A model generated the notes under the pieces. The model had not been told where the DNA came from. It did no database searches and saw only the letters and a program-made list of their open reading frames with translations. Positions 2,910-59,600 of a stretch of 64,000 bases of DNA are shown here, one piece after another (the first letter of the stretch is position 1; the number at the start of each line of letters is the position of its first letter). A program made the position numbers and the translations under genes. Source of the stretch: Perna viridis. Lineage: Eukaryota. The stretch spans positions 51,652,862-51,716,861 of the forward strand of contig CM074511.1 of assembly GCA_037379345.1 (NCBI GenBank), read 5' to 3'.

Positions 2910-3120
2910 ATACTGTGAAAGTACTGTTGTTTGTGAGGTACCTGTTTTCGAGGTTTTCAAAATTTGGTTGCCAAACAAAAAGATTCCAATTGATGTCTAT
3001 CCTGAAAACCTCAAAACCACTAATTCAAGAATCTATGATCTTGTGTTTCTCCATGAAAATTGATATCCACAAATTGAAGTACTTGCATGGTAATTCTATA
3101 ATGATTGTATCTAAGTACTG
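2910..3120. mobile_element. TA-flanked Tc1/mariner-type MITE
   Basis: Starts TACTGTGAAA; internal sequence is the reverse complement of 53818-54023. Confidence 0.7.
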
Positions 3121-4094
3121 AAATGAGTTAAACAACATGGAGTTGAAAGTTATGGAGTATATGTAGAAGTGAAACTACATGCCATAACAGGGAATCTGGA
3201 TTTCCTATGATCCTGAAAATAATTTAGAGTTTTCAAATAATGTTGATAACTAAACAAAGTAAACAGAAGGATTCCAGGATTAAAGGCTAGATTGTAGACT
3301 TAACATCCCAATAACAAGTGTAAGTAATCTAAAAACAAAAACAAATGTCCTTTTTATACTTTTAACCAGTTAATTCTCTGTTGTACGAAATGTAGTTATG
3401 CTCATCTCTAATGTTAAACTCCAGTTAATGAATTAACCTAAACTTTAACAAACATTGATATTTCTGTTTTTAATTTCTGTTCTGTGTTGGTATTATGTTA
3501 TCATATCAGGGGAAACTATATTGTAATTTATTATACGGAAGTTTATGGAAAAAGTAGTTTTGATGTATCTTGTATTTGAGCAATGTTGATTCTTCTTTTC
3601 CAACCTTGTCCAAATAAAGTATTGGAAAGTTATCAAGTCTTATTCTTAAAGCCTCTTCTCTTGTCAGACAGATGGTGGATTATCCATTTCGATCCACAGT
3701 TGGTAAGATAATTCAAAATACTGGCAGTTTTTAGTTTTTGGTTTTTTTTTTGGGGGGGATAAATAATTGAGAGGAAGCTATCATTCACTTTTCCATCATT
3801 ATTCGATTGTAAAACTACGTTTGGTTGGTATTATGTCGGAAAATTTTGGAAAGCCTGTCTGCAGCGGTTAGTAAGAGAGGAAACGAACATCTGCTGCTGT
3901 TATGTGCTTTTGAAGGACGTTAATTGTAGAGTGTTCACAAAGGTTTCATGGACGGGTGGTTGCATTACTATATCCCATCGCAATTTTGTTGGCGAGGGGA
4001 TAATAAGACAGTTGATATATTAATTTTAGCACCTCTGTAAATGATGTTTTTTTGCTGTGTTGTAGTTTCATGTGCGGAGAAAATAAGATAATTC

Positions 4095-9803: not shown

Positions 9804-10964
9804 GATTGATTGTTATTGTCAAAACAGACCAAGGAAGAGAATGATGCAAAGGTAATATGAAAATTATTGGATATAAAACAGGAGCTTGAAATCTTATCAT
9901 GAATGATAATAAATGAATTCACACTTGTTATTTTGCTCCCAATGATCCCAGATTTGTCTCTGAATAACCTTTTGACATCAATGAGACAATGTAATTTTAA
10001 ATTGTGATGTCCTTAATCATGAGGAGGGAAGGGGAATTCAGTACAAAAACAACAGGAAACTGTATAATTTTCACCTATGGTGTCCACAAGTTAAATATGT
10101 CTATATGAGTTAAGCAGAGCCTTCAACTGAGCATCACACTTATAAATACACTACACTCAGTGACTTTTTGTTTCTCTAACACTCGTCAGGGTTTTAAATC
10201 TGTGTTAGTTGGATTTTTTCACAGTGAAATGTTTGTGTTAAACCCACCCATCTGGGACATGGTATATTCCAATTGTTGATTGTGTACAGAGAATCACTGA
10301 CCTGGGTGTGAAATTCATCCAGCACGGTGAAATTAGTCTTATTGATCTCTGACGACAATATGGATGTAAGTACCCAAGTTCCCAGGTCACTGACCTCCAA
10401 ATTCATTTGGGACCCCTGAAATTCACAACCAGCAGTTTGGATGAGGAAAGATGTTAATAGGGAAGCTTTTCTCATTGAGAAATACATTCTGTTGTTGATT
10501 TGGAGAACTCACTAGGTGACAATTTGTGCATACTCTTAGATACAAATTTCAGTGTTGGTGAAGTAAAAATAGTTACACCTTTTATCAGCATGCTATATTA
10601 AAATAACTTTTTTTGAAATGAACATTAACTCTGCCAGAGAAACCTGCCGGTCCCAAGGCTGGAAGAAGGAGGATGATCTATATATACATTATTTAACTAA
10701 AATAAAAGTCTTATAATTGTTATATTTATATAATTGCAAAAGAGATGAACAACCAATTATAAAGGTTTTTTTTTTTAATAACATACAATAACCACACCAC
10801 ACATCTAATGTAGCACTAAAACAACATAAAATATATATTTGCTAATATTCTGGTGCAAAAGAATCATTAATTTATTGGCACAATTTAACTACGAAAATAA
10901 AAAAGTATACTGTGCAAAACGAGTACTGGGGCAAAAGAGTTGTGGTGCAAAAGGACCATGAATT

Positions 10965-22200: not shown

Positions 22201-25200
22201 TTTTGGATAGTTTTTACTGTGATGTACAATTTTGTGCACTCTGTAGAAATTTACTGCTCAGACTTACATACGTGTGGAATACAAGTTTCATGTAAGCATT
22301 TTTATATCTTACTTCTATTTTGCTTAAATTTAAAACCAAAAAATATTTACTCTCGATTTGTCATTTTCCTTTTCTTGATAGTTATAAGATAAAGATATTA
22401 TGATTATGTAATGTTACATTTATATCATTATGAACTGCTTTTTTTCTTTTCACACAAATTTTATCATGTTCCTGATCAGTGTTAATGCACTAGTAACTTT
22501 ATACAACAACCTGCCAACCATGTACCGATAGTTACTAAAACACATATGCTGTTATTTAATCAGAATATATATTCTAATTATCCCATTATTTCTCTGTTGT
22601 TTATAAAGAATGACACAGATGTTTGAATAAAAATATTATATTTGAAATTGATCAGATACAGTCATTTTTGATATTTAATTTTGACCACTAATCCAAGTTG
22701 ACAATTTATTATTTGTTCATTATTTGACAAATTAATCATCTTAGTCTTTAGATTCAGAAATATTTCCGTATAATCACATGTATAACATTTTTCTACATAA
22801 ATTTTTGCATGCTGCATTGCATTATTGCATTTTTGTCATTCTAGATTAAAACTGCATTTTTTCATTGTTTAGGAAAAATTTTGTTCAACCTATGATTATA
22901 TGATAAGGGGCCTTTTTAAAATCCCCCAAAACAGTATCAGGTGTTCTAATCTCTATCTTATTATATTCTGATAGATGGTTAACAATTAGAACAAAACCAA
23001 TTATGCTTAACACATTATTTTTTTTTTCATCGATAGATAAAATATTTCTGTAATCTGTTGACGTTATTCTTGGCTCTTGGTTAGCGTGGATTGTACTGTG
23101 TTAGCTCAAAGTTGAAATATTGCATTAGAAAATGTACTGTAATGTCATATCCAGATGATGTCTCAATTAATTTCTGATAGAAAGTTTGAAATTGACCATT
23201 ATGAATAAAATCAGGTTTTATTTATGTACCCAAAACACAAATATCAGTGTTCTATGTTTCTACTATCCCATCATCCTGGGTAAGTGCAATTTGACGTGTG
23301 AAAGTTGTATACTATGTTCCACTTTTTTTTTGGATGGTAGAAAACTTAAATTTCTGAAAGCAGACTTTAATCAAATTAATCTTTATTTGACGTTTTCCAA
23401 TGGAAACCTGAAGTTTTATAAAAATCCTAGAAAGCTGAACAGTGTTGAAAAAAAGTTATTATGGTCCTAATGTCCTTAAAAGCCACTAACAGCTTAAAAA
23501 TGAATCAATAACATGTGCATTGTAAATTCTGAAGTTAATCATTCTTGCTGCAGTTTTGAGTACTAGGTTTACACTACATGGCAATTTTCCAAGGGTTATA
23601 TATGCTTTTGCTGGTCTGTCTGTCTGCTATGAAGCTGTATGAACTTAACAACTTTCAATCATAGCCTTTTCATGTAATGGTGTGATGCTTTGTGTTGAAG
23701 TTAAAGTATCCAGATTTATAACACTGGTATATGGGATGGAGCATGTGAATTTTTGTGTAATATGTTAATATAGTACATGTATAAATCATGTAGTTACCAT
23801 CAATTTATTTGATTTCAGATGAAGTTGGTGGCGTAAGTAAAAACCATGGGGCCCCAGCTAACGTGGTAGAGATGACCAGATACAAGGCCCTCTCTGTAGT
23901 AGTACAGTCCAGTAAATCTTCAGTGGTGGTCAATGTTGATGATACTGTGGTAAGTATGAATTGCCAGGGTATTCAGGCATTTTAAAATATTTACTCAACT
24001 GTTTAGCTCTATAATTAGATTTTTTGTTGTTGTTAACTAGAATAATTGCTTTTGTGATTTAGGGGTATAAATATTTTGAGTTTTCAATGGTTTAGTATTA
24101 TATAATTAAGATCTTCTGTGACATGTAAATGGTGTTATTTGATCAATTCTAAAGCATTGAAAAGAGATTTTGATTGTCATCTGAGCTTCCTCTTCCTAGT
24201 TATTTTGTGTTACCTGTAATTAATTACCTGTATCATTTTTCTGTCAAAGTATACTCAGTCAGACATAATAATGGTAAAATGTTATCCAGAAAAAAAAATG
24301 CAAGGTAGAAATACCATAACAAAGTAATTAAAAGTAATAAGTAAAAAAATTTACAGCTTGCTATTTGCATTTACAAAAGCAGAATTACTTATTAAAAAAA
24401 GAACTCCCATATATTCTATTTGATATTACTGTATTGTGGGTAATTTTTGTGGGGTGCTAATTTTGGCATATTTTAGAAGTCTGTCTAAAAAAGCCAAAAA
24501 TATACCAAATTTTAACTTGGGGCTAAAGTACTTAATTCACTACTTGGCATCCACCAAATTTATAAACATCAAAATATTTTCGTATACCTTTTTGCCTTAA
24601 AATGCCCATATTTTACACACTCCAAAATAAACTTCCTTGGTTCAGTATGCCATAGATTTTAACTGGTTTTTTTTTTTTTTTTCACAGTTAATTCAGGATG
24701 AGGAGTTCGACAAGAACAGAGGTATCCATGTAGCTGTACTAAACCAGGCAACAGTATGTATTCATAGGGAAAAATTACTTTCTAAGAAAGATTGGTGTGG
24801 CTCGTTTTTCAACATGGCTAACTTAATAAATTTACCCGACACATGCATTGTCATTTACTGTATAGGAAATACTTCACTAGGAAATAATTAAATGACCCCT
24901 AAGCTACATTGACAGGATGGGTAGTATTTAATGTCAGGAATGGGAAAGTGATCTGACTTTGTTCTTATAGTTATTGTTAAAGTTTGAGTGATATGCTTTA
25001 CTATTACAGTATCATATTAACACAATTTTTATGAAGCAGAAATATTGACATATTTTTATTTAAAAAATGTCCATTGTACATATACATTTCACTAATCTGT
25101 CGTTGAATTTATAAAACAAAACCATCTATGGTAATTTGAGAAATTTGACACTTCCATTTATTATGAGCTTCACAGAATTTATCTCATAAAACTGTAATAC

Positions 25201-50692: not shown

Positions 50693-53600
50693 CTGGAAAA
50701 AAGAAAGACAGAATGTACCAGTATCATCCACATCTGTTGGCACAGCACAATAGAACAAAAAAAAATTATGGTAAACATTATTGAATTGCTCTTATTCCTA
50801 TCTGTTTTTTTAATTTCTTCTCTGTATGAAACAAATATTTAAAGAAAAGTTTAATATGAAGTCTTCATTTCCTGCAAAAAGTTTGGATAACCCAAAAGGT
50901 ATGTGTTGATGATCAAAACAACATCTTTTAACACCAAAGCATGATTTGAAGCTAACTAAACTTAGAGTACTCACCTAGCACCATCGACCATGGGTTTGGT
51001 ATTAGGTAAAACTTGTGCCATTAGTTCATAACAGGGTAGACATATACCAACTAAAAATCCAACCTGTAATTCAAAATATTACTAAGGAGTAATCATAGGA
51101 ACCAAGATTCTAGTGGAAAGCAAAAGAATGTAATCCAGGGACAATAACCAGACATGGAAAAAGTCAAACACATCAAAAAACATAAAGTAACTATATTAAT
51201 ATATACAAAGTAACTAAAGTAAATGAGCAACTCGGACTCCACTAAAAACTGGGAACATGGACCAGGTGCACCAGTAGGGTGAGATTTCTCTGCTAATTGG
51301 TGTGTAACCAAAACAAACAAAAAAAGCATACACAAGAAATTAACTACATCTTTAATAAACTAACAAGGTATTTCCCATTCCTAGTCAAATTAAAAAATAA
51401 ATTTACAAGATCTACTAATCATCATGTAAAACCTTGACATTCACCTCTGAGAAAGTAGGGTTGATGGAAAAACTATGAATTTAAAAATTACATACAAAGA
51501 TGAACTAACAACAGACTCATATCACTGCTTAGAGGGGCATGGAACTAAATATTTTAATAGAAATACTTATATACGTAGATACCTCTAAATGTGGCAGTTC
51601 ATCTTTTTTGTCTCTATCCATCATTGGTACCGGAGTTAAACCTTGTGATTTCTCTTCATCTCCCTAAAATTCCAGTCAATAACTATCACTACAATGATTT
51701 GTCTCCCTCACAATACTTCAAAAAAAGTTAGACAGCAACCACTTTTATACTGAGGAGGTCTAGGATTATTTAAAACAAAAAAATCAAAATTTCAAGCTTA
51801 AAACTTTTTTTTACCCAGCCACGGACAGCAAAAAATATGATACAAAATTTCCCCCATTTCTTAACAATGTAGATTTTCAAATAAAATATGCTACCTCTGG
51901 CTGCTGCACAAAAATACAAAAAAAAATCTGAACCAGCATCCCCCCCTCCTCCCTGTCCTCTGAGAAAAAAAAATTGTCTGTGTCTTAATTACCGTTCAAA
52001 CTTAAGGTGATCTTGACTTAAGCAAAATGGTGAAGTAAGAAACCTGCAATTTTTTTGTTCACAGATATCAAGAGACCATTCAAATTTTGTCACATGATAA
52101 CACTAATCTAAAAACCAAATACATGTACATGTATATTCAACCATTTCTAAGTCAATGGTCTTTACTCTTGGTAAATCAAAATAGAGCTATTATAATTAAA
52201 TATGTGTTTACCAGCTTTATTCCTTTAACAGAAAGGACCAAACTAATAGCTCTAGAATAATTTAACTTATTTAAAGCACAGCAAAAAAATGATTAAGATA
52301 TTTTATACTTTAAGTATTGATTTGTTGAGGAAAATTACTTTCAAATTGGTATGATCAAAGACACTATAATTAACATTTATTTTAGGTTATACATTTTCAT
52401 TGCTGTTATTGACCATGAAGTTTGTTGATCTCTTATAAGTTTTATGAAACACTTATTATTATCTGAATATATATTCTACTTAACAAAATATCAAAAGGTG
52501 ACAAGACATCAGCGCTTTGAATAAACATCAAAATGTCCATGCAATAAGCTTCAAAAAGGGAAAAATCAAATCATATTTTAAAGTGGAAATACACAGCAAA
52601 CTATATGATCATTTAAAATCCCAAACATTCACCTTAATCAAATACTATAATGATTCAACTTTTACTCATTACAAAACACAATCAAAAGTAACTGATCAAT
52701 TTCCAGAACGAAAGCTCAACTGTAGGAAAGATTTTAAGTTACTTTGGTCCACCTCTGTGGAACAATCTTCAAACAACAGTAAGAAAGTCCCAAAACTGCT
52801 AAAATTTTAAAACAGATTAAGATGCCATTTACTCAGCAAACAGAGTAGATGTTTTTGTGTGACCATGTTAGTGTGCATTTAAAAAAATGTATTATTGAAC
52901 TTTTATGTGTTTATTTTAGAGGGCTTCATGGAATATTAAAGTATCTACTAGCTGTGTTTCCCTCTGGTTAAAGTAATATTATTATTATTATTATTATTAT
53001 TCATCTATGAATAAATATGGCCAATACACCTAGATGCAAAAATGACAGTAGAATGACATCAGTACAAGAAGGCAACTTTAAATATTCAATGATCCATATC
53101 CCTACTATGAATCACAAGATACTACTATAATATTCTCATAACAAAAGCTCAATTCTTCTCAATATACTCATAACATCTATCAACTTCTCTTAGCAATGGC
53201 CAATAAATACATTAAACAAATTCTCCCAACAGTTTCCAATGCACTTGTAAAATTCTCCCAACAACAGCCAATGCTTTTATAAAATTCTCCTTAACAATAT
53301 CCAATTTACTTATGATATAACAAACCTGAAGCCAGAATTCCTCCATGATAACATTGACAACTTGAAGTTGTATATTCCAAGGTTTATACATAGAACATAA
53401 ATCACATGCAGTCATACTTATAGCCATCAATACATGCCTGGAAATATAGGGCAAACATAGCAGAAAATTATATAGAAAAAGGATTCTGTCTAGACATGTG
53501 TTCAATGAAAAGTGTTAGTATCAAAGGTCTTATAAAACTTTTAAACCTGGTGCTCCGAAACAGGCAAAATTAAATGTTTCTCCCTACAAAAAAGTATGTT

Positions 53601-56600
53601 TCGTCTTTTCAATAGTTCAAAAGGCTATAACGCCCTCAAGACAGGACTAAATCATTGTCTCCCCATCAAAGTGATGGATAAATAAACCAAACTTAAAATT
53701 AACTTGTTTAAATCATAAAGAATTTTGTATACTGGCAATAAAATTAAAATAATGGTAGATTTGGAGAAAGAAGCTAAAGCATATGAAAGATATTTCAGGG
53801 CTTAAACTTTTATACTACTGTTAAAGTTCTTTAATTTATGGATACCAATATTTGTGGATTAGAGAAGAAAAACAAATTTGTGGATTCTTGAATTCGTGGT
53901 TTCGAGGTTTTCCATATACACATCAATTGAAATCTCCTTATCCCTGGGAACCAAATTTCGTGTTTTTGCCTACCCATGAAAACCATGAAATCTGGTACCC
54001 CATGAATAATAGAATTTTCACAGTACCTTATTATGAACACATGGCTAACTAACTTGTAGGTAATTATCGTACAGTAAAAGCGCCTATGTTGTTTATGTCT
54101 GAAGAGGCCATATTTTTCGTATTAAAATTATCTTATTTGTTATTTGGAAGTAGAGAATATATGCTTGGGAACAAAAATTAAAAGTTCATGCAAAGCAAAC
54201 AGATATTTTCAAAAGAGTGAATAATGCAAGTTCAGCAGAACTAAATATAATTCCATGCAGAAATGTCATGCTGTGTGTCAATACCTGTTGATAGAATTCA
54301 TCAAATATAGTGTGCACAGTCTGAACTTGTATGTTCCATGGCTTAGAACTCGCACATAAGTCACAAGCAGTTATAGTTACTGATCGAAGTAATTTTCTGT
54401 AGTGGGATAAATTAGAAAATCTTTTTAAGTCTTAAAGCTTATTTTCGCAAGCATTTGAACTTTTATAAACAGCTAGCCTTTTTTCCCAAGACTAATTATA
54501 ATGAAAAGGTTTGGCAAGGGAATTCTGTTTTTTTAGTCAATTACCAATATCGAAACATGGTTAAAAAGTCCCATAAATATTATAACTGAAATGTACATTG
54601 TATACAAGGAAAACTCCTGTAAAATTTCACAATGCTTCCTTAGAATATCTCAACACCATCAGTAACTTAACATAGATTCTCCCGTATATAATGATTAGTA
54701 AACCAACAAACCTGTGCTCAGTGTTGTCCCATGAAAATTCATTTTTATCACACACTTCCTGAAGTCTGGCTCTGTTACCAAAAAATAAGGCTAAATCTGT
54801 TGCTAATATGCATTGTCTAATATCACCTAAGATCTAAAAATAATATGAAAAAGATAAAAATTAGTTGTCAATTTTATTAAATAATTCTGTAAGCATTGTT
54901 TCATTTTCTCCTCCAGATCTTCCATTGTTAAAAGTAGACAAAACTAATGAAAATCAACTTATTAATGTGAGTACTCATTTTCATGTTTCACATTTCAGGA
55001 TATCAATTCAATTTCGCTTTTATTTTCATGAACACTCTGTTTGGCATATAACGAGAATGGATATTGGGATATGTCAAAGAGATCCCATTGGGATGAAAAA
55101 TGTCACCCTAAGGCCACCCATGAGTCTAAATGTTGAGGAAAACCTCACACCAAATGGCAGGCTGCAGCTGGCTCCAATTAACTCCATTCTACTTTCTGTT
55201 CAGATGACCTTTCTGATCAGCCAATCACAGCATATTATTCAAAGGGAAAATCTCAAGGACTCTGAAAAGGTCATCTGAACAGATCGTAGAATGGAGTGTT
55301 GTTAGTCCTTACATGCCTTGACTCAATAGAACAACTGATTGGTCTAATTTTGATTAGATTGCAATATATTCAGGTGCAGTAAATTTTTTCAATGTGGAAA
55401 TTAAATTAATCATGGCAATTTATTTTTGAGATTTTTTTCTTATGCACAAATTAGACAGACATTATTGCTTGCAAAACTAGTAGAAAAAGGAACAGATATG
55501 GTGAAACACAACAAGTATGTTTACAGTAGTTTATATTGTTTTGATGCTAGAGGTTGTCTGGCAAGCTATTTCCTGACTAGGAGCAATCAGTGTATTGAAG
55601 AAGAGAATATAAATGTCATTTATTATAGGAGAAAGATTCTAACAAGATTTGGAGTTATCTATTCTACCTTTTTGAAATAGCTACTATTTGATTATAAAAT
55701 CATAGTTCTGATTTGTTCTAACATGACAAAAATTGTGAACTAACCTGTTTGTATTGATCAGATGTCAGATGCTTGAAAATATTATGGCCTTCATTCTGAA
55801 ATGACAGAAAATAAAAGAACATTGTTCCAATTTATTAAAAAGATATTGATTCATTGAGTTTAGCTGAAATGCACTATGAAAAAATGGTGGGAAAATTTTC
55901 CTGCACTTTTTCCCTATATAAGCAGTAAAAATATTGCAGGTCATAATGTGTACATCACAAATATCAAATTTGTTATAAAGAAAAATAAACCAGTTGGGGT
56001 TAATAAGTGCAAAATGCTAATTGTCACAGAAAGTAGGGTTGATGTATATCTAATGATAAATAAATTTAAAAAGCTTTTTGTTTGTTTTCTAGATGTAATG
56101 AATATATTTTAGGCAAAAATGATTAAATTGGGAAAAATGAAGTGCCATCCATTGCCTGATTCTTACGCAGAATGGTACTTAATTAGAAAGAGTGAAGAAC
56201 AAAGAAACGATCACCAAGTGATTTTACTTGAGTTATTCATGATAACCAATTGACTAACCTATCTGCTTATATATATTTTCTCAAAAATATTTTACTACCA
56301 GCAAAATTCTTAAATTTTTGTGATTGGACTATTGGTTTTAGTTGGTAGAGTGAAAATACAGAATTTATTTCACTAGTGATAAATTTTACTGGGGTATCAA
56401 AATTATTTACACGTAGGGAACATTGGATAATTCAGTGTTATCTATATAATAAGTATAATAATTTAGTATCTAGAACTAACTTGTAGAATTGTAACTGTAT
56501 GGTTGAAATGGTGGTGTTCCATTGTTGAGGTAGAATATATAGCTGCCAGTGGTGATGCACTCTTCACCATGAAGGCATTGGTCTTCCCACGGTGATCTAA

Positions 56601-59600
56601 GTCATGGCATAAACAGGCCACATACAAGGCCAAACACTACAAATAAATACAATACCATAAATATATCCAGTGTATCAATTCTTTTTACAGAAAAATATCC
56701 CTCATGACATATGCAATTTAACTGAAAAGAATTTATAAGAGACAGGTAATAAAACCACAAAAAAAACTCTACTTTTTGACCTACACAGCTTTTAATGTTA
56801 AGATAGAGTGCCTAGCTTATATACTATTATACAAACTACTCAAATAGTACATGTTTATGGCACAAAAAATGTTATCCATAACACACAACAATTTAGACCC
56901 AGTCATCTAGGACTGAAAAAATGACTTGACTGTATCATAATGACACATAATACTAACCTCCACAGGTGTGAAGCAATGTTTTGTTGTCTTAATCACAGTA
57001 TACACAGCATGTGCCACAGAGAAAGCATGGGCCCAATTATGATAGGGAACATTGCGGTAGTTTTTCTTCACAGTTAGCGTGAACCGGATCATGTCATCTA
57101 TATCATATCTAAAAGTATATAAATCCCTACTCTCATATTGACAGCTGTTTAGACAAGACATAAACACAGATATATCAGTGAAACCTGCCCAAACCTTATA
57201 AGAAGACAGAAAACTCCTTCCAAATAACTAACTTGTTTCAAGAATTTTAGGTTACATGGTTCAGACAAATTTCACCCATATATGCAATTATATGATCAAA
57301 TGTTATTCAGTGGTCTGGACACATCAAATTTATTCTGCATGGGCAGTAAATGGTGTATTTATACTAAAGCCTTAATGCAGTTCCCATTTTATAGCATAAA
57401 AAGCGGTGATAAGCACAAGTTGGCTATTCTTTGTTTGATTTCACTATCTAAATGACCTGTGATTGTGGAAGGCAGAGTAATGAGATCAAGTGAAAACAAG
57501 AAGAAATGGTTTTTTAAGATCGAGAGGTTTTACAATAAATGAATTCAATAAAGCTCTTCATGAGATTGTTTTTAACTGAGTTAACTACGGTATGTTTTAA
57601 ATACTTAAAAAAATGAAATACAAACATCTTTCGAATATCAAAAGTACAAACATTCATTCCCATTCTTTCAAAAATGCTCCTCTTCATAGAGGTTTAATTA
57701 TTACAACAAAACACTCATGCATATTGTTAAAAATTAAAGCAAAATGCAATCTCAGCTTAACAGAGATTTTAAACAACATCAAAATTTCTCTATCACTCAT
57801 GTTAACCACAATTCCACCAGTTATCAATTACTTTGTAAGTGTAAGTTATCAATTTATCTTTGTTTTAGGACAATAAAAAATGACTCATGGGCATTTTAAT
57901 TTTACAATGCTTAATCATGTAAAAAAAATACATATAATGATAAATGGCCATTAAAGCCCTGAGTTCTACATCTCCAAAATCCTCCTCGATATGTTAATGA
58001 GAGATATTTAAGTTCAAATATCTGCTGTTTTTATTTGTTACTCCCGTAGTGGTATTAATTCAATGTGGATCCTGAAAAATTCGAAAGATCTTCTGAAAAC
58101 CCTCAATTCAAGATTATTATCAGAATACAATAGCATTGAAACCTAGGATTTTCAACTCTGTATACTTCTATTCCCCATACTCAGTTAAAATCCTAACTGA
58201 AAACCATTATACATCGTTAGACAATATACCTAGACACAGATATGTACTATTTCATAGAGATTCTTCATACTTTGGAAAAAAAAATTCAAATCATCTTCCA
58301 TATATACCGAAAAAGAGGTTTTCAAAATGCTGGAATTTTTTACTGACAACATATTTGTCCAGTGTGGTGAACATTCCAATGGGAACAAATTAAGCTCCTC
58401 TTCTTGCTGTCCCATTCCTTCACTCTTATGAGGCTGACTTTATAGCTGATCTAATCCAAAGGAAGGAACATCATCTAGCCAGATCCTTTGATCTCAATTT
58501 CCGCTATATAGATGACGCATTATCATTAAACAATCCTAGTTTCAGGAGTTTTATACATCACATATCACAAGAACTTGAGATAAAGGATACTACAGAAACT
58601 GTGAAGTCAGCCTCATATCTTGACTAACACTTAGAGATCGATGGTAAAGTAAAACTATTGACTAAACTATATGACAAACATGATGACTTTTTATTCCGTA
58701 TTGTCAACTTTCCTTTCAGCTGCGGCAACATCCCATCACAACCTGCATATGGAGTTTTCATCACAACTCATACGTTATGCCATAGCTTGCTATATCCCTG
58801 CAGACTTTTTGTACCATGTAAGACTTCTCACAATTAGGCTTCTGGAACAGGGTTATGTTGCTACAAGATTGAAGTCATCACTAAAGAAGTTTAATGATTA
58901 TCATCATGAACTCATGGATTGTTATGGTGTATCCATCTTCACCATGCAAATCAATTTGTTCAATATGTCATAGTTTTCCTTCCCTCTTTGGTATACCCAG
59001 GATTTGATTATTTGATTTTTTATGAGCAACTCAGCAGGTGTTTCTAGAAAAGCAGAAGATGCTTACCATACTGGTGCACCTGGTCCATGCTCCCAATTTT
59101 TAGTGGAGTCCAAGTTGCTTATTTACTTCTGTTGCTTTGTATTTATTATTTTTGTTATTTTATGTTCTTTATTGTGTATGTATCTTGTTTTTGTCCCTGG
59201 ATTACATTTTTTTTATTTCCACTAGAATCTTGGTTCCCTTGATTGCCCTTTGTAAAGTTGGTAGATAGAGCCTTTGCCAAATTAAAAAAAAAATCTTAAA
59301 ATTACTTCTCCATCATGAAATCTCTGAAATGGGAAATATAAGACTGATATCAATACTTCAATAAGAAATTTTTGAGTTTTTTTTAAATAAGCACCTGGTA
59401 TGATTACTCAGTAAGTTACAATGAAACATTTAAATCTAATGAGATTTTAATTGTTAAGTTGTGCTAAGAATATCCCCATTCAACCATTTTCATTAAACAG
59501 GAAATAGATGCCAGTAAGTGAGGAATCTGGAAAGGGAGATACACAACTCATCATGCAAAATCAATGTACCAAATATCTAAGCATTCCTTCCAATAGAAAC

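Follow-up and report, generated by a model that had tools for sequence, protein, structure and literature searches.

A probable pair of mutually exclusive exons encoding one wall of the catalytic pocket in a PDE10/pde-5-type phosphodiesterase gene of Perna viridis

The window analyzed here, a 64,000-nucleotide stretch of Perna viridis DNA (GenBank assembly GCA_037379345.1, contig CM074511.1, positions 51,652,862 to 51,716,861), carries on its minus strand catalytic-domain exons of a cyclic-nucleotide phosphodiesterase (PDE) gene. Among them lie two tandem exons of 112 nucleotides each, exon A (54396-54285) and exon B (53437-53326), which encode two versions of the same segment of the catalytic domain. 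We put at about three in four the probability that A and B form a mutually exclusive pair that arose by an ancient tandem exon duplication in this PDE10/pde-5 orthologue. B is the exon spliced in within the samples seen so far, and we infer the use of A in this species from its relatives.

Exon A (CAS.KPW ... IFDEFY) is of the ancestral type and exon B (CSMYKPW ... VIMEEFW) of a lophotrochozoan type; the segment comprises a metal-binding Asp and residues of the pocket. The pair is flanked by constitutive exons, all on the minus strand. Upstream are an exon with the metal-binding motif HDLDHRG (56481-56638, defined by RNA joints and translation), a catalytic-domain exon of 51 nucleotides (55745-55795, RNA joints), and an exon of 122 nucleotides (54712-54833, joints 55745>54833 and 54712>53437) that ends in the AG of a split Arg codon. 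Downstream follow an exon of 81 nucleotides (51583-51663, GDEEK ... LPHLE), held by joints 53326>51663 and 51583>51063 in all four RNA runs, and the exon carrying the clamp Phe (50973-51063), recognized by a 12-letter protein motif and supported by translation and an RNA joint. The introns around the pair measure 315 nucleotides between the upstream constitutive exon and A (54397-54711), 847 nucleotides between A and B (53438-54284, with a repeated element inside), and 1662 nucleotides between B and the downstream constitutive exon (51664-53325). Further catalytic-domain exons were read from minus-strand open stretches with motifs of 38 and 12 protein letters. The metal site (HNWxH/HDxDHRG) is contributed by YHNWAHAF and CHDLDHRG in upstream exons and by the Asp of TACDL, present in both A and B.

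The gene model was compared with databases exon by exon. Over complete exons, the constitutive exons of the window are 73-98% identical to an Ostrea edulis protein bearing the RefSeq name "probable 3',5'-cyclic phosphodiesterase pde-5", and single exons taken alone match PDE6, PDE5, and PDE10 without separating the families. The catalytic domain of the Mytilus edulis orthologue (P0202) scores 303 bits against human PDE10A, its best catalytic-domain match among solved structures, versus about 240 bits against PDE5 catalytic domains. Depositors of Mytilus coruscus and M. galloprovincialis sequences likewise named the orthologue PDE10. Orthologues carry GAF Pfam domains in a tandem-GAF plus PDEase architecture, and the GAF exons lie upstream of the window's end. 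Judged from these matches, the window gene is the invertebrate orthologue of PDE10/pde-5, and its original assignment as PDE10-type is borne out by the scores of the Mytilus protein.

Exons A and B are built alike. Each supplies one base that finishes the split codon, which reads Arg (AG+A or AG+G) with A and with B alike, followed by 37 codons in the same phase; both are stop-free, with a pyrimidine-rich tract and AG in front and GT behind, and all splice sites of the pair are GT-AG. They share 19/37 residues and 71/112 bases, with different codons at 9 of the 19 identical residues. These counts, together with the coordinates, length, phase, boundaries, and open frames that had been proposed for the pair, were all recovered on recomputation. 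By the Nei-Gojobori method, the proportion of synonymous differences (pS) between the copies is 0.64, corresponding to a saturated synonymous divergence (dS) of about 1.4, and the proportion of nonsynonymous differences (pN) is 0.29, so the duplication is old. A tblastn search of the window with A returned B at E = 5e-12, with no other match below E = 0.3; the likeness is far beyond chance. Each exon is single copy in the 723-Mb genome, the next matches (41-45% identity) lying on other contigs. Since 112 is not a multiple of three, the frame shifts with both exons or with neither, as the original prediction had stated: A and B together run into a stop at codon 12 of B, and omission of both leads to a stop in the downstream exon, at its codon 9.

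Expression was assessed in contigs assembled over positions 50900-56700 from four runs of four studies, of unspecified tissues and in a form that drops rare variants. Joints 56481>55795, 55745>54833, 54712>53437, 53326>51663, and 51583>51063 occur in all four runs at contig depths of 40-63, with the two joints of B at 43-63; the contigs are spliced and thus contain RNA. Every spliced contig uses B. When proteins of 45-141 residues were searched with the 81-residue open frame that surrounds A, no candidate emerged; this result carries little weight, as B-type fragments of the species were absent too. The A/B intron also contains a stretch with an RNA contig depth of 220-400 (53810-54003). Summed depths inside the PDE introns run from hundreds to tens of thousands over this stretch and over 51094-51287 and 55168-56331; these stretches most likely belong to repeated elements that are transcribed from other loci.

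The two exon versions are widespread. Searched with a profile of A and B, a set of 1.84 billion representatives yielded 542 matches of two recognizable kinds, one A-like (CAS.KPW and VIFEEFY-type motifs) and one B-like (C[SA]MYKPW and VIMEEFW). Isoforms in relatives were then collected by a region-restricted search with the oyster protein and by cluster look-ups. In ten or more other lophotrochozoans, isoforms of one gene on a single chromosome record differ in whether the A-type or the B-type segment stands between flanks that are identical: the bivalves Mytilus edulis, Pecten maximus, Argopecten irradians, Saccostrea echinata, Crassostrea virginica, Mercenaria mercenaria, and Mya arenaria, the gastropod Haliotis rufescens, and the nemerteans Lineus longissimus and Tubulanus polymorphus. 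Annotated isoforms carry A or B and never both, which shows that the two exons are a genuine alternative in these relatives. In M. edulis, isoform X19 (XP_071150569.1) has A and the other 10 isoforms listed have B (e.g., X9, XP_071150498.1); among the isoforms of Mya arenaria the A-type is the commoner. The B exon of the window is 37/37 identical to a transcript-derived protein. A heterodont bivalve has the A-type in a Logan protein derived from transcripts (P0207), so this type occurs in real RNA assemblies.

The genomic arrangement is shared as well. At the Crassostrea virginica locus L020, the upstream exon ends at 22672 and is followed by A (22868-22979) and B (23595-23706), each of 112 nucleotides with AG and GT boundaries and in the same A-then-B order as in the window. 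In contig L009 (GCA_013332975.1), an A-like exon lies 741 nucleotides upstream of the B exon with the same boundaries. In Ostrea edulis, all of the 15 isoforms listed of 18 carry B, which taken alone would suggest that oysters do not use A; the A isoforms of Saccostrea and Crassostrea contradict this idea. Among the proteins retrieved, Octopus, Argonauta, cnidarians, arthropods, nematodes, and one priapulid have the A-type only, and the B-type occurs in molluscs, nemerteans, and the annelid Ridgeia. This distribution makes A the ancestral-looking version and B a version common to molluscs, nemerteans, and an annelid at the least; the pair predates the molluscs.

Substitution patterns show both copies to be conserved by purifying selection across several species. 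Between the window and Crassostrea, A is identical at 23/37 residues (pN 0.21, pS 0.98) and B at 27/37 (pN 0.15, pS 1.02). Compared with its counterpart in the metagenome relative L001, the window's A exon differs at 14 of 23 synonymous and 11 of 88 nonsynonymous sites (Fisher p = 6e-6). With pN/pS of 0.20-0.21 against both species, A is under purifying selection as judged by these counts. The per-exon comparison called for by the original prediction thus came out in its favor, and saturated pS and the low ratios agree with its view of an old duplication with both copies maintained. Among oysters, the A exons of Saccostrea and Crassostrea agree at 37/37 residues. A tree built from the 37-residue segments is poorly resolved; in it the B-types group together (2 changes versus 12.2 in shuffles), as do the pteriomorph A-types (89/92).

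The segment that is exchanged lines one side of the nucleotide pocket. We take the Asp of TACDL to be D674 of human PDE10A and number residues after the human sequence. With that equivalence, the pocket residues assigned in the original prediction fit the alignment. The ligand pocket of PDE10A includes L675, V678, I692, Y693, F696, Q726, and F729 (PMC8979230), a list with which the numbering by the TACDL Asp agrees. In the window, A and B differ at 677 (Ala/Ser), 678 (Ser/Met), 679 (Ser/Tyr), 693 (Phe/Met), and 697 (Tyr/Trp). An alignment of 11 species having both versions was used to compare the types, and at five positions, 666, 669, 679, 693, and 697, no residue is common to both. Position 666 is Gln, Arg, His, or Glu in A and Met in B; 679 is a small residue or Ile/Val in A and Tyr or Phe in B; 693 is Phe, Ile, or Tyr in A and Met in B in 11/11 species; and 697 is Tyr in A and Trp in B throughout (11/11 each), Trp also being the human residue. 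At 678, A has Ser in 10 of the 11 species and B has Met in all 11. L675, I692, and F696 are invariant in both types. Two pocket positions with type-specific residues kept across phyla are the best argument for differing handling of substrates or ligands, and the most likely distinction between the A and B enzymes would be one of affinity for the substrate, of preference for cAMP or cGMP, or of sensitivity to ligands. The difference in cAMP/cGMP preference or kinetics proposed originally stays a prediction.

In the explanation that we favor, an ancient tandem duplication would have produced two exons for the same 37-residue catalytic stretch, where the metal-binding Asp and one side of the nucleotide pocket are found. 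The swap would exchange the residues equivalent to V678 (Ser versus Met), Y693 (Phe versus Met), and W697 (Tyr versus Trp). At the least, the reading frame enforces the choice of exactly one exon, and the out-of-frame products would probably be removed by nonsense-mediated decay, which is the simplest mechanism. A, which is closer to the one version found in cnidarians, arthropods, nematodes, and cephalopods, is probably the minor or context-restricted choice in P. viridis. Steric exclusion by intron size is ruled out, since the A/B intron, remeasured at the 847 nucleotides given originally, is too long. Docking and selector pairing, suggested as a further check, found no backing: an inverted-repeat scan gave short AT-rich matches only, none of them convincing, and the introns of relatives do not align with those of the window and are too diverged for pairing to be compared.

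Several points weigh against a working A/B switch in this species. Within the assembled contigs of the four runs no joint touches A: the junctions 54712>53437 and 53326>51663, named beforehand as tests, were seen in every run, and their counterparts 54712>54396 and 54285>51663 in none. A is covered solely by unspliced contigs of depth 3-6 that reach into both introns (e.g., 53706-54436 and 54091-54400), at the level of the surrounding intron. In contigs L006-L008 from a close relative whose B exon is 37/37 identical, no A-type exon was found within 1.5-1.8 kb (around 1.7 kb) upstream of B. A also evolves faster than B, somewhat so in the mussel lineage, with 30/37 versus 35/37 residues identical to M. 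edulis, and much so in L009, with 15/37 versus 27/37 residues identical to the window; the terminal branches of the window exons in the tree are 0.18 for A and 0.054 for B. For the relatives, the isoforms are gene models that RefSeq predicted automatically. The missing joints, the intron-level coverage, the long branch, and the contigs without A all suit a silent relic, that is, a pair that works in other molluscs in a lineage that now uses B only and in which A has not yet decayed. We regard such a relic as unlikely. A keeps an open frame, its exact length, both splice dinucleotides (AG and GT), the metal-binding Asp, and the motifs KPW and EF, and its changes relative to other species are mostly synonymous. 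Contigs that lose rare variants, here from tissues of unspecified origin, cannot prove the absence of a rare isoform, so the lack of an A joint does not mean that A is never used. The original prediction had named two signs of a dead exon, no junction reads and loss or decay in relatives; A joints are absent from the contigs of the four runs, and A is kept in many relatives. Its claim of mutually exclusive use is supported by the annotated isoforms of at least ten relatives; within the species itself, only B joints were seen in the four runs.

A might alternatively act mainly as a poison exon, inclusion of A with B lowering PDE output through nonsense-mediated decay and no second enzyme being made. 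The stop 12 codons into B fits such a role. The A-to-B joint 54285>53437 was not seen in the assembled contigs of the four runs, however, and a poison exon would not require PDE-like coding, yet the A protein segment is conserved across phyla and sits in full-length annotated isoforms without B; we consider this role very improbable. The chance that A and B belong to different genes, resemble each other fortuitously, or reflect duplication in the assembly is negligible. Nothing was found in favor of these origins. One locus, shared RNA-supported flanks, and single-copy exons refute them, the same tandem order recurs in Crassostrea and L009, and 63% nucleotide identity excludes a recent assembly artifact.

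The pocket of this gene also departs from that of human PDE10A outside the A/B segment. The position of human PDE10A Q726, the invariant Gln at the purine-selecting site, is Glu in the window, where joint 51583>51063, seen in the four runs, reads ...LPHLE|VGF... (codon 51583-51585, minus strand). Among the orthologues retrieved, all bivalve and gastropod proteins have Glu apart from the Q-type oyster isoforms, and those of cephalopods, annelids, nemerteans, or other phyla do not. The original prediction left this residue out of account. Because Glu replaces an invariant Gln here, as it does throughout bivalves and gastropods, carrying vertebrate specificity rules over to these enzymes is uncertain. 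Oysters possess another alternative pair, in the exon that follows. At the Crassostrea virginica locus L020 it comprises an 84-nucleotide version (24128-24211) ending in ...LPESQ (Gln) and an 81-nucleotide version (24791-24871) ending in ...LPHLE (Glu), each found in different RefSeq isoforms. A Pinctada gene model joins the Gln and Glu versions in series, and Lineus has two versions of this exon as well. In the window, intron 51664-53325 contains no second version of the downstream exon, and the Glu version is the only one. In L006-L008, the only downstream match to the next exon is very diverged (3109-3383; 44% identity, ending in ...LPEDE) and lies some 1.4 kb beyond B. This copy could be a further alternative or one that has decayed.

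Duplicated exons of this domain turn up in other animals too. In L009, the HDLDHRG exon is present in two tandem copies (2530-2682 and 3422-3574), AG/GT bounded and each 80% identical to the single copy of the window, which are possibly a further alternative pair. The bdelloid-rotifer-like metagenome contigs L002-L005, from a compact genome, have tandem copies of the exon at the A/B position 117 nucleotides apart (9983-10090 and 10208-10312 in L002), and annotated proteins of Rotaria and Adineta show one or the other copy between identical flanks. In echinoderms (two sea stars, a sea urchin, and two crinoids), two versions of the A/B-position exon occur in isoforms of one gene (P0231/P0384, P0235/P0387, P0267/P0396, P0230/P0402, and P0270/P0405). 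One type carries KPW and a stretch of 11 letters, the other KPF, and each groups across classes in the tree, which does not decide whether the echinoderm and lophotrochozoan pairs share an origin.

Compared with human PDE10A, the window gene belongs to the same catalytic fold family, has the DLC motif after the metal-binding Asp, and has orthologues of the same tandem-GAF plus PDEase architecture; it differs in having Glu for Gln at 726 and, for Val678 and Tyr693, Ser and Phe in A and Met and Met in B. The mollusc RefSeq pde-5 isoforms stem from the orthologous gene and show the same two exon versions between identical flanks, but they are automatic models of other species, P. viridis not being among the proteins retrieved. 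Caenorhabditis elegans pde-5 is the source of the RefSeq name; nematode orthologues have a single A-like exon, and a second version was not seen in the nematode proteins retrieved. A search of open-access papers and preprints found no description of a PDE alternative exon inside the catalytic pocket. To our knowledge, vertebrate PDE10A variants differ at the N terminus and not in the pocket, and the known isoform diversity of PDEs concerns regulatory and targeting regions, the catalytic pocket being treated as fixed for each gene. Alternative exon pairs from tandem duplication are described for the oyster alternative oxidase CvAOXA/B (PMC5589949) and in a human survey (PMC8373072). These too are homologous, adjoining exons of equal length, of which one is chosen at a time to supply a given segment of the protein; the pair in the window differs in swapping part of a metal site and substrate pocket and in being common to molluscs and nemerteans. 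The isoforms are already implicit in RefSeq models of relatives and pairs of this origin are a well-known kind, so that what is new is the recognition of the switch and its evolutionary depth, not the kind of mechanism.

The interest of the pair lies in the site of the swap and its age. Splicing would rewrite part of the pocket, with each version keeping its own fixed residues across phyla, a pattern suggesting that one gene yields two enzymes that handle substrates differently. We offer, tentatively, a wider picture in which a single PDE gene has had pockets of different nucleotide preference chosen by splicing since before the mollusc/nemertean split; oysters, with the Gln/Glu pair, could then make up to four active sites, and echinoderms have a comparable two-version exon at this position. 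The A and B versions constitute a natural experiment on the roles of positions 678 and 693, and in oysters also 726, in cAMP/cGMP selectivity, and the switch bears on the annotation and expression analysis of molluscan cyclic-nucleotide signaling.

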